Notes: generated by a model from the letters alone, not told the origin. 64,000 nt of DNA from Paragordius varius (GCA_964247055.1 OZ176051.1:4588001-4652000); one strand, 5' to 3'. Counted from the first letter of the stretch, positions 11,485-62,400 are shown. Numbers and translations are program-made.

Positions 11485-14400
11485 ATGTTCAAAAATCGCC
11501 TTTTGCCAAAACAATATGCCATCACAAATATTTTAAAATTATCTACTGATGCTAAACCTCCGTCCTCTAAAAAAGTAATAAAATCGTTTATTTAGATATT
11601 TTCTTTGAAAGACGAAGATCGGATATTTACCAATCTTTATGGACGCCATGATTGGCACCTTACCGGTGCTTTAAAAAGAGGTGATTGGTATAAAACAGAC
11701 AAAATTTTAGCTAAAGGAACGGAATGGATTTTAAAAGAAATAACTAAATCGGGACTTAGGGGTCGAGGTGGTGCAGGATTTCCAACTGGTTTAAAATGGG
11801 GTTTCATGAATAAGCCAGTTACAGATGGAAGGTATATAATTAATAATTATATATTTTGATGGAAAGAATTATAATATTGAACGAATAAGTAAAAAATATA
11901 AAATTTTTGGACAAAAATTTATTGAATTTTGGCGATTGAATGATTACTGTGATAAAAACAGTCCTACAAATAAATTTTATTTTTTATCCATTTTTTAAAC
12001 CTAGTTTTAAAAGTTTTGTGATAATATTATTTGATTTACCCATTTCTTACTTTCTATCTTAGTCAAGCAAATGATTTGTTTAATTTTATTTCAAATGAAT
12101 TGATTCTTCTTTTTACGAAGAATTGTAAAGACTTATATACATTTAAATATATATACTTAAATAACATAACTATTCCTCATTCGTGGAATTTAAACGAGTC
12201 GTATTGTATGTGATTTAACAATGCCATTTTATATTAATTAATAAAAATATTTTTGCAAGACCGCCTCCTTTCTCATTGTTCTAACCACAGTAGGGCAAAT
12301 AATCTTTATTTTTATTTTAGTAGGTCTTTTTACGGATAAATTAAACTAATATATAAATATAATGCCTTTTTTGATTTTTAAGGCCTAAATACTTGGTAGT
12401 AAACGCTGATGAAGGCGAACCCGGGACCTGTAAAGACAGAGAAATTATGAGACATGACCCGCATAAACTTATTGAGGGTTGTCTCATAGCTGGACGTGCA
12501 ATGGGTGCGTGTGCCGCTTACATTTACATCCGTGGAGAATTTTATAATGAAGCCATCAATGTGCAAACGGCAATCCAAGAGGCATACAACGCTGGATTTT
12601 TGGGGCCAAGTATTACAATTATGATTTTATATAAAACCATGATTATTTTACTTTTTTCGTTCATATAAAAAAGATTCGTTTGTTTTTCGTTTTATAACAA
12701 AATATACCCTTTAACGATTCAAATTCACCCTTTAACAATTCAAATTCACCCTAAAAATAAATTATGTGTTTTCGAACTAATATTACTCATTATGAATATG
12801 AAATATATCTTTATGGCGCATAGTTTATTATTTTTTCAGTATTAATTGAATTTAAAACAAAATTTTATTTTTTAAAAACATATAAAATATAGGTAATTTT
12901 TAATCTTAAAAAACATATAATTTATTTGAGGGTGAATTTGAATTTTCAAGGGTGAATTTGAATTGTAAATGGTATATATATGAAATATTTACACCTATAG
13001 AGTATTTTGGAACCTGTTGGGTTTACAGTATTATGAATGTCCTCCTACTTAATTGACTTTAAAAAGCCAGACATTTTCAAAGCATAGTTTGAGATATTTC
13101 TAATTATTAACCTATAATAGCCATATATATGTAATGATAGATTATCTTTGTATACTTCCTTATAAACCGCATTCCTTATTCTTGATTAGCGTAAGTGTCT
13201 GATATAATATCCCTCCTCTTCCCATGAATGATTTATTTTTTAACATATTTTTTTAAAAAACATTCAGATTTTTAGAGCTTTTATCCATGATTGTTAAATA
13301 AACCCTTGCATGTATTCTTAGAATCAAAACTGGGGTATCCCTTTGATGTTTTCGTACATCGTGGTATGGGTGCTTACATTTGCGGCGAAGAAACCGCTCT
13401 TATTGAATCGATTGAAGGCAAACAAGGAAAACCAAGGCTTAAACCACCTTTCCCTGCTGATATTGGGGTTTTCGGATGCCCCACTACTGTGGCCAACGTT
13501 GAAACGGTCGCAGTGGCCCCTGTAAGAAAACATTTTTTGGATTTTGAAATTTTTATTCGATTCTTAGGGTTACTTTATATGAATCTATGTTAATGTTAAA
13601 GAAATGACTTGATAGTGGAATACCCCTTATAATGTCTTTTCAAACTCTTAACAGGCCGTCTAAATCACTGCTTAGGATTTATGTGACCCTTGTAAAACTT
13701 TTTTTGGGATTTTTTTTGTTTATTTTTAGATTTTATTTTTTTTAATACTAATTTAGTGTCATTCCCCTACATAATGAACTTTTCCATAGATCGCACCATT
13801 TAACGGTTGTGGCCATTGTAATTAATAATTGTGGATTTTTAAATATTTACGTTTTTCATTTGTAAATTATAATTTCATTAAAAATCTGATTTGAAAATAT
13901 GTAGTCCCATCCTTTATTATGGTCATACACAGTTATAATATACTTCATTTAATGATAAAAAAATCGCCGTGGCCTATGTAATAAAAGCTATTTTTGATTT
14001 TGGCCTAGTAGATTTAGTTAATGTAAATTACTAAAGTTATAATTTGAATTTAACAGTTAGATAGTGTAATTCCCCTTCATTATAAGCCTTTTCAATTAAA
14101 CAGCGCTTATAAATTATTCTATTTAATGTCGAAACGGTCGCAATAATTTCTGTAAGAAGTTATTCTGACACATTGAATCCTTACTATAAAAGTTATTATT
14201 CGAATATATACCATTTCCCAGTCTAAATAAACGTTTTCCCAGTCAATCGTAACATTTTCCCAGTCAATCGGAACGTTTTCCCAGTCAATCGAAACGTTTT
14301 CCCAGTCAATCGAAACGATTTCCCAGTCAATCGAAACGATTTCCCAGTCAATCGAAACAATTTCCCAGTCAATAAAAACATTTTCCCACTCAATAAAAAC

Positions 14401-59471: not shown

Positions 59472-62400
59472 ATGACATCAGTCGTCAAAAAACGCGTTGG
59501 ATTTAAGGTTGCAAACGACAATTATGATATTAAGACACTAAATAATATTAAACCCGGTATGATTATGCGTTTAATTTTTAGCTTTTGATGCAATAAGCCG
59601 TTGCGTTTTAGAACCCTTAGAGGACAAATCTAACAATACAACTGAAGAGACCTTAGTGAAATCTCAAGCTTTGCCCTTATTAAATAAAGAAGATAGCAAT
59701 ATTAGTCCGTCACCAAATTTTCTAGTTTGTTCCAAGGTTTTTTTGCATTTTGTATATTGATGTATAAATTCCATATTTTCATATTTGATAAAATGCTAGA
59801 TGGAAAACATTATTGATAAAATGCAGGATGAAGTTAACGGTGTACCAGTGAAAACTGTCAAAAGTTTGATTACGAAAATTCCCTCAGTTTTTACTGGTTT
59901 ATTTACCTTATAATTTCATAGGCGTCGATTTTATTCAATGGCTGATGAATAATTTACAAATTGAAGACATCGGTATTGATTATATATATTAAAAAAAGAT
60001 TACTTAAATTTTTTGGTTTTTTTCCATATCTTATGAAAATGTGGTTTCTCTATTAATCATTTTATAGCGGTTTTACATTATTTCATAACATTCAAATAAC
60101 GATAATTAGTTTATTAATAATTGTTATAATAATTTTTGTGGTGAAACATATTAAATTAGACTTATAAAAGTGAAAATTTTTTAATCATAAAATTACCCGT
60201 TTATTTAGAAATTTAATTTTATATAACTTTATTTAAACTTTGAGTATTATTTAATAAGCTGTAAAACCCTTAAATCATAAATTTCTCAATTTAAAACTCC
60301 AATTAGTTAATGAGAAATAAAACATTAAAACTGATTAAACAAGAAAAATAATTTTAACTAATTTTTTAGTTAAAATTTATATTTATTAATCAGGAGAAGC
60401 TATACATTTGGCACATATGATGGCTTGTTATGGATATGTTTTCCCCATAGATGAACATATCCTTAACGTTAAAAATGATGGAACTTTTTATCGATTTCAA
60501 GTTAAAACTTAATTTTTTTTTCTTTTTTTTGTTTACTTTTTATGTTAAGGATAAATTAATTAATAAATGATTATCAAAATAATAATACATTTGTGCATGC
60601 GTAGAGTTTTAATTAATTTTACGAGCTACAAATATATATATATACGTAAACATATTGTATGTAGTAGTTAATGTAATTTCAAATACATTGACGTAATAAA
60701 TGCGTCACTGTGTTTTAATCTATAACATATTTCTCTTTTTATATAGACCCCTTTTTTGTGGCCTTCTAATCAAAATGAACCTGAAAATACTGACTATGGT
60801 ATAATACAAATGTTTTTTAATAAAATTCAATATATCTACATTAAAAAATATTTATTAATATCTATTACAATAATTCAATTTCTAAACTTTTAAAATTCAT
60901 TTTATACGATATATTGCTTTAAATGAAAAATAGCCATTTTAAGTTTATAAATGTTGGCTTAGAAGTGCTCTTACTATATTTTGTTGTAAAAGACACTTTT
61001 TGTGTAGTTGAACAAAATATCAACAACTAAATTTGAATAAACCAGAAATAGCTAAGTATTTTCACAAATCTTGAAATATTTTGTTTTGCAGCGCATTTTT
61101 TTCAGATTTTATAATTTTCGACATATACTGATTAATATTCAGTGATAATTAAACATCATTTTTACTTAAGAAAAAATTCCCAAATATATCATAATATATA
61201 TAAGGTACCGAAATAGTGGATGTATTTAATAAAAATGTTAAAGGTTTGACAAAAAAATATCCCATTTAATATTATTTCATATGTTTTTTATCAATATACT
61301 AGATATTTGCAATTTCTTGATAATTATATCACACATTAATGCTTTTGTCTTAAATTTTGTTTCACCTTTAATCAATCTAATTTTTGGCTTAGAAAATTGA
61401 TTTACCTGTAGAAATTAATTATTGCAATTTTTTAATCTACTTATCTTTGATATACCTCATTTTTTAATAACATATAAATAAAATTATATATATATAAAAA
61501 TAATTTTAACTAATCAATGTAAGTACAAAAATATTATAAATAATGTTTAAAAACATTAAGCTGTATACCTGTGTAAACGTACCATGCAAAATAAGGCAAG
61601 ACTTGAATTGGGCGATTATGAGGCAGAAAATTTGGCTAGATTGCAAAAATTACTTTCTCGCAAATGGGAATTCATTTATATGCAAGCGGAAGCACAGGCA
61701 AAGTATAATATATATAATTATAATCATCAAATATTTTATTTTTTGACAAAATAATATTGGGAATTTTTTTTAAAGTATCAAAATTATCCTTTGGTATATC
61801 CTGTTTAAATTTTTAGGAAATCATTTTTTTAAAAGCAATTAAAATGACTCTCTGACAAAATAAAAGATGATAGTTTAAATTTAAGCAATGAAACAATATG
61901 GGTAAGGATTAATTTTGTGTAATTTTTTAGCCCACAGCTTTCTTTTTCTCTCTACCCAAATTATAAGATGTATAGTTTACTTTTTTTTGAAAAAGAAATA
62001 TATTGGAGCGATTCCCTAAAGATATAATGTTTTTAAGATAATAATAATTACAAAAATCAAAGTACCATAAAAATATATTATTATATTGTTTAGAGTTGAC
62101 AGAAAACGGGATAAATTAGAACGACAAGTTTTGGATAGCCAGGAAAGAGCTTTTTGGGACGTTTATCGCCCTGTGGTAAAAATATATCTCATTTTTTTAC
62201 GACTCTAATTTTACTTTTTTTGTCCATAATTTATATTCAAAAATTTTTCTGCTATATATATATATATAGCCAGGTTCAATTAATGTTTTGGAAGCTGATA
62301 TGAGAAAATCTTGCCGATCTTTGAAGTATGGGCTGACTAATAAAGTAAAATATTTTGAATTTATTTTTATATGAGCTTTTTTAATTATCTTATAATTTGT

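Follow-up and report, generated by a model that had tools for sequence, protein, structure and literature searches.

The 64-kb window of Paragordius varius DNA considered here (OZ176051.1:4588001-4652000, the whole stretch analysed) has a G+C content of approximately 28% and carries ordinary animal genes, among them NDUFV1, GLO1 and an RGS7/EGL-10-type gene in which intervals of 21 to 26 nucleotides (nt) with GT-AG ends interrupt the coding sequence. Evidence from this window and from elsewhere in the assembly supports the existence of a distinct class of GT-AG introns of 21-36 nt, hereafter micro-introns, which coexists with kilobase-sized, transposon-filled introns. Judged from sequence, these intervals are very probably genuine U2-type introns of a nematomorph genome, lying near the minimum length of the splicing machinery and recognised across the intron by normal small nuclear RNAs (snRNAs).

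The full set comprised 26 introns, four from the window and 22 from genes recovered in searches of the whole assembly (110.6 Mb, 44 contigs) for members of the chaperonin (CCT) and proteasome families, for which the 5' parts of the matched genes were read. An intron was accepted into the class if an exact GT-AG junction joined conserved exon pieces in frame and without a stop. Homology searches were run exon by exon, and the joined frames were checked in local scripts only. A reference-free scan of the window for GT-AG pairs joining open frames was also attempted and dropped, as the TG-GA control exceeded GT-AG on the minus strand (466 compared with 384), leaving the scan without power.

The 26 micro-introns span 21-36 nt, with a median of 25 nt, and all of them lie within approximately the first 115 codons, among the first one to three introns of their gene, which bears out the claim of a preliminary description of this window that ultra-short introns are found among the 5'-most. 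In CCT3, CCT4, CCT6, PSMA1, PSMA2, PSMA3, PSMB4 and PSMB7 they occur in runs of two or three, separated by exons of 45-100 nt. They are nevertheless a minority, accounting for one of eight introns in NDUFV1, one of at least nine in CCT1 and two of four in PSMB4, with the remaining introns ranging from 55 to 2813 nt. Within the curated CCT and proteasome set there were no introns of 37-54 nt, whereas eight measured 55-102 nt and many ran to several hundred nt. The empty zone between 26 and 60 nt that had been described from the window was drawn too sharply and reflects a small sample, given that introns of 27, 28, 31 and 36 nt were found and that the spacing of adjacent matches in Ras-family genes, from which lengths can be estimated by match coordinates only, implies a few introns of approximately 46-58 nt in addition to those of approximately 22-26 nt.

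In a Ras-family gene at G000:C5:5361143-5361730, four adjacent exon matches are separated by only 1-4 nt and overlap in their profile positions, a spacing from which three introns of an estimated 20-22 nt, spanning the whole of this small gene, are deduced. In PSMA1 (G000:C4, minus strand, oriented coordinates 1259-1292) the first exon contributes only the ATG to the coding sequence and is followed directly by a 31-nt intron, and two further micro-introns of 27 and 31 nt fall within the next 50 codons. The 24-nt micro-intron of PSMB2 (G000:C1, minus strand, oriented coordinates 1586-1609) is in frame and contains no stop, and can be recognised only because its retention would add eight residues that are apparently missing from homologues such as the human protein. 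Searches based on reading frame will therefore miss such cases.

Within the window, all four of the GT-AG intervals originally listed, of 21, 26, 25 and 25 nt, exist, with two coordinates in GLO1 requiring a shift of one position. Removal of three of them restores a conserved protein without an indel, as had been stated, while removal of the first interval in the RGS gene only supplies a start codon. In NDUFV1, exon 2 has homologues at 81-86% identity, contains no in-frame ATG and has a frame that is shut by the TAG forming the acceptor of the 21-nt interval, and the homologues carry 30-60 extra N-terminal residues upstream of the portion that exon 2 encodes. Exon 1 ends in P..KK, similar to the context preceding the conserved LKDEDRIF block in homologues. 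The later introns of this gene are 551, 712, 2813, 483, 386, 704 and 1023 nt long, and the largest contains an inverted-repeat element in which a 21-nt unit is tandemly repeated in arrays of 9.6 and 10.1 copies, in agreement with the earlier observation that tiny and kilobase introns occur together in one genome. A perfect GTAAGT is also present at 11478-11483, seven bases 5' of the NDUFV1 ATG, and is probably unused or part of a leader because the frame upstream of it is without an ATG.

The GLO1 interval is bounded by homology on both sides. Exon 2, for which the matching lactoylglutathione lyases reached 59% identity, has a frame that is closed directly upstream, and exon 1 aligns with the N-terminus of animal GLO1, sharing the first four residues and the positions of a Cys and a Pro with Priapulus. 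Together, exons 1 and 2 reproduce the Priapulus N-terminal length exactly (33 residues to the conserved KD).

In the RGS7-like gene, retention of micro-intron b leads to a stop within eight codons. The exon preceding it matches RGS7 from residue 27 to residue 58, and a further exon at 60390-60500 corresponds to residues 77-111 of solved RGS7, such that the 18 residues between 58 and 77 are accounted for by exon 4 and two split codons once micro-intron b has been removed. Micro-intron a is plausible and moderately supported, although weaker than the other cases in the window, and its candidate upstream exon is required solely to supply an ATG, which exon 2 lacks. The end of exon 2 presumably resembles the residues before RGS7 residue 27, a likeness that would count against a different first exon. 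Coordinates of the window features and lengths of the micro-introns in the remaining genes are listed in the table.

Table. Features of the 64-kb window, and micro-introns of the CCT and proteasome genes elsewhere in the assembly
Feature	Position	Strand	Remarks
NDUFV1 exon 1	11485-11574	+	ATG at 11485; 30-codon basic presequence
NDUFV1 micro-intron 1	11575-11595	+	21 nt, GT-AG, in-frame TAG
NDUFV1 exon 2	11596-11831	+	conserved protein resumes at 11596
NDUFV1 exons 2-9	11596-19581	+	junctions enumerated, partly by eye; exons translated
Inverted-repeat element	14205-15603	.	inside the 2813-nt NDUFV1 intron 4; arms of 319 nt, 96% complementary
GLO1 exon 1	39306-39247	-	20 codons from ATG at 39306
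GLO1 micro-intron 1	39246-39221	-	26 nt, GT-AG, shifts the frame
GLO1 exon 2, 196-nt intron (38868-38673) and exon 3	38596-39220	-	exon 2 used for homology search
RGS7-like candidate exon 1	59473-59556	+	ATG at 59473; not conserved
RGS7-like micro-intron a	59557-59581	+	25 nt, GT-AG, exon -1 G, A at +17/+18
RGS7-like exon 2	59582-59736	+	no start codon
RGS7-like intron	59737-59799	+	63 nt
RGS7-like exon 3	59800-59896	+	corresponds to residues 27-58 of solved RGS7
RGS7-like micro-intron b	59897-59921	+	25 nt, GT-AG, within the DEP domain
RGS7-like exon 4	59922-59972	+	bracketed by neighbouring exons; itself too short to score against structures
RGS7-like exon 4 and later exons	59922-64000	+	runs off the window; introns of ~250-760 nt
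CCT3			micro-introns of 27, 28 and 36 nt
CCT1			micro-intron of 24 nt
CCT6			micro-introns of 23 and 23 nt
CCT4			micro-introns of 25 and 26 nt
PSMA3			micro-introns of 23 and 28 nt
PSMA2			micro-introns of 25 and 28 nt
PSMA5			micro-intron of 25 nt
PSMB7			micro-introns of 22 and 22 nt
PSMA6			micro-intron of 23 nt
PSMA1			micro-introns of 31, 27 and 31 nt
PSMB4			micro-introns of 25 and 27 nt
PSMB2			micro-intron of 24 nt
Inverted-repeat element, second copy	6773-9211		inverted ends across both copies 214-319 nt, 91-96% complementary; both copies built on 21-nt tandem arrays
Reverse-transcriptase fragment	44280-44711	+	RVT_1, E 8e-15; probably a non-LTR retrotransposon
Multi-exon gene	48607-50458	-	last open piece matches an FkbM-type methyltransferase domain (E 2e-5); other pieces without a Pfam match

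Two proteasome genes found their best protein matches in Gordionus sp. (Nematomorpha), at 76% identity for proteasome beta-1 (next best 57%) and 79% for a beta-7 exon, which places the animal with the horsehair worms or close to them, outside the lineages for which ultra-short introns have been published. Comparison with the Gordionus PSMB4 gene, as defined by its RefSeq protein, provided a set of intron positions, with six introns of 38, 43, 46, 42, 49 and 41 nt. The first and second of these occupy the same positions as the 25-nt and 27-nt micro-introns here, indicating positional homology for the class, the third is absent here, and the fourth and fifth coincide with introns that here measure 695 and 579 nt. 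In the translated alignment the 27-nt interval appears as a nine-codon insertion containing two stops, located at the Gordionus intron site as determined by separate exon mapping. The proteasome beta-1 gene (PSMB6, G000:C4:8319802-8320473) is a single open frame here, and its Gordionus counterpart has one intron of 1278 nt.

Sequence signals common to the micro-introns were sought within and immediately outside their boundaries. The last exon base (-1) was tabulated for 25 of them and is G in 18, a feature that was not used for selection (binomial p 3e-8 against a background of 0.2), compared with five of the 15 longer introns for which the donor was read. At intron position 3, 17 of the 26 have an A, giving GTA, and positions -5 and -6 are mostly T. 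When the introns were aligned from their 5' ends, a peak of A was observed at +16/+17 following a run of T (max-statistic shuffle p 0.0036), and no such peak was found among the same 26 when they were aligned from their 3' ends (p 0.24), which suggests that the 5' site and the branch point are separated by a constant spacing. The TT(T)A-type motif previously put forward as a possible branch site is thus retained only in this refined form, as a T-preceded A at a set position, since by simple presence neither TTTA nor TTAAT was commoner than in shuffled introns; TAAT was mildly enriched over shuffles, uncorrected. None of the 26 carries the U12-type 5' site RTATCCTT, and the micro-introns and longer introns have GT-AG ends and an A/T-rich consensus in common.

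The assembly contains the expected components of a conventional spliceosome. U1 retains its canonical 5' end, ACUUACCUG, U2 is multi-copy with the GUAGUA box kept, U5, U6 and U6atac are present, and a U2AF65-like gene with several exons was also found, as was the helix-hairpin domain of SF1. No loss or alteration was seen in U1, U2, U6, the U2AF65-like gene or SF1, so that the unusual or dual mode of splice-site recognition that had been suggested for the window is not supported. The U2 matches (approximately 30) cluster at G000:C3:257000-528000 and the U1 matches (approximately 13) at G000:C6:565000-634000, in each case a mixture of genes and decayed copies. The U6atac match (G000:C2:4857045-4857187, approximately 205 kb from the window) scored 66 bits, well above threshold, and the minor spliceosome is therefore probably retained. 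Nematodes, by contrast, have not retained it. A search of the genome for U12 snRNA gave no match, a result that is not evidence of absence.

A possible mechanism is that U1 would pair with a 5' site that depends on a G at exon position -1 and continues with GT and A/T, that the branch adenosine, preceded by a brief run of T, would be placed approximately 16-17 nt from the 5' site, and that the AG would be located 5-20 nt beyond the branch adenosine. The distance from 5' site to branch point, combined with the AG spacing, is proposed to set a floor of approximately 21 nt, which would be the length reached by the NDUFV1 intron, whose candidate branch A is at +16, five bases from the intron end. 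Later introns of the same genes, of 55-100 nt or of hundreds to thousands of nt, would have been swollen by repeats. Actual splicing, the location of the branch point and the reason for the restriction to 5' ends are each matters that we infer from the genomic DNA.

Several observations weigh against this interpretation and should temper it. The A peak rests on 26 sequences, and the branch consensus yTnAy was not enriched in the micro-introns over shuffles. The introns sampled were curated by hand in conserved housekeeping genes and came to light through breaks in reading frame, a route that favours those containing stops or causing frameshifts. Among the window cases, the 21-nt NDUFV1 intron leans on a presequence that is not conserved, and no homology spans the junction at RGS7-like micro-intron a. 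Protein searches with GLO1 exon 2 (best identity 59%) found no near-identical, RNA-derived protein of the species, and those with NDUFV1 exon 2, which is too conserved to inform, likewise found nothing near-identical.

The alternative that fares best is a second, specialised pathway for micro-introns, involving either a 3' site factor that acts independently of U2AF, as described for human short introns, or an effect of proximity to the cap. It would account for the two separate length classes, the strict 5' location, the greater frequency of exonic G at -1 in the micro-introns than in the longer introns and the anchoring of the branch signal to the 5' end. However, no core component was seen to be missing or altered, in a survey that included no specific test for alternative factors, and the dinucleotides and A/T-rich consensus are the same in both classes. 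Further, myxobolids possessing only tiny introns keep canonical U2 and U2AF (PMC13644364). A separate pathway is considered unlikely; nothing points to a second machinery, and a dual mode is best treated as hypothetical.

A narrower alternative concerns only NDUFV1 and the first RGS interval, for which the upstream frame may not be the true first exon, the real one lying further upstream and using the same acceptor, or translation beginning elsewhere. Both upstream exons encode non-conserved sequence, the strong GTAAGT at 11478 lies close to the NDUFV1 ATG, and the ATG at 59800 could in principle serve as the start of the RGS protein. For NDUFV1, however, no ATG is present in the frame upstream of 11478, and the basic presequence terminates in the conserved P..KK context. 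Moreover, both intervals carry signals of the class, namely an A at +16 to +18 in each and an exonic G at -1 in the RGS case. A different first exon is thus judged improbable for these two, slightly more so than a specialised pathway is for the class.

Far less credible is the idea that the intervals stem from errors of assembly, or from frameshifts within genes that are decaying, and have GT-AG ends by coincidence. In an AT-rich genome GT and AG each occur at approximately one in 20 positions, such that a single case could arise by chance, and the window scan showed that many chance GT-AG pairs join open frames. Nevertheless, GT-AG is found at the exact length-restoring positions in all 26 intervals, whose lengths cluster at 21-31 nt. 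The enrichment of G at exon -1 was not selected for, two of the intervals coincide with annotated Gordionus introns, and the genes concerned are essential, single-copy housekeeping genes. The least credible explanation of all is that the intervals are cut from DNA rather than RNA, in the manner of ciliate internal eliminated sequences, with the assembly representing germline DNA: ciliate eliminated sequences overlap in size and some worms do eliminate DNA, but the intervals here have GT-AG rather than TA-TA ends, follow an exonic G and are rich in T towards the 3' end, their positions match ordinary spliceosomal introns of Gordionus, and the set of splicing RNAs is full.

If the intervals are U2-type introns, as is preferred here, the finding adds an ecdysozoan parasite to the animals with introns under 30 bp. 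Both length extremes occur within one gene and one nucleus, which makes the question of minimal intron length testable in single transcripts, and the 5'-anchored A signal offers a concrete hypothesis for the 21-nt floor. Aligners and gene finders operating at their default minimum intron length will break many gene 5' ends in this genome, with a bearing on the low completeness scores and the gene loss reported in the phylum, for which the Gordionus genome, with a completeness score of 71.6%, is an example (10.1101/2023.06.26.546503). It is tentatively proposed, as a view with somewhat less than even prospects, that Nematomorpha joins two other animal lineages as a third, independent case of sub-30-nt introns and is the first to have a promoter-proximal class built on a ruler of approximately 16 nt, in which the same spliceosome removes kilobase introns downstream, and that part of the reported loss of universal genes could be an annotation artefact if predictors skip such introns.

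Among known systems, the nearest relative found differs in its length distribution, as all six introns of Gordionus PSMB4 are 38-49 nt, with none under 30 nt and, in that gene, no contrast between 5' and 3' ends. Introns are unmentioned in both the Gordionus genome report (10.1101/2023.06.26.546503) and a comparative nematomorph preprint. The preliminary description held that sub-30-nt introns are typical of organisms in which nearly all introns are short, a generalisation that overlooks the microintrons of flatworms, a separate and 5'-clustered class (PMC6530080). These were defined as introns of less than 75 bp, with a peak at approximately 37 bp beside peaks at 90 bp and in the kilobase range, and are present in Opisthorchis, Clonorchis, Schistosoma, Echinococcus and Macrostomum, with splice sites nearer to consensus and a reduced pyrimidine tract (Ershov et al. 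2019, PMC6530080). The micro-introns resemble them in forming a separate short class, in their preference for gene starts, in adjacent clustering and in being missed by software at its default minimum intron length. They differ in size, with a peak at approximately 25 nt, a range of 21-36 nt and a floor of 21 nt, whereas the flatworm class, with its peak at approximately 37 bp (near 32-37 bp in Platyhelminthes), is roughly 10 nt longer. Given that the host is an ecdysozoan, the origin of the class would be independent of that of flatworm microintrons.

Tiny introns are also known from ciliates and nucleomorphs, for example those of approximately 25 nt in Paramecium and 15-16 nt in Stentor (PMC5014332; as cited in PMC13644364). 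These systems are comparable in minimal length and in employing a conventional spliceosome, but they are non-animal and have tiny introns throughout, for which no confinement to gene starts has been described. Among animals, a survey of 51 genomes encountered introns of less than 30 bp in no group other than myxobolid cnidarians and a dicyemid, while predicting that further lineages would be added (Hadjez et al. 2026, PMC13644364). Myxobolids and Dicyema have compact genomes with an overall median intron length of 22-27 bp (PMC13644364; Lu et al. 2019, PMC6736024), and in myxobolids and Dicyema japonicum weakly conserved A residues recede from the AG as introns lengthen, while canonical U2 and U2AF are kept (PMC13644364). 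The likeness to the present class is extensive, taking in a length of 20-30 bp, GT-AG ends, a 5' signal of little beyond GTA, an A whose position is set from the 5' end, the retention of canonical U2 and U2AF and a parasitic host. In contrast to these lineages, however, the micro-introns described here are a minority confined to gene starts and retain a well-kept exonic G at -1, in a genome whose introns mostly measure hundreds to thousands of nt and contain transposons.

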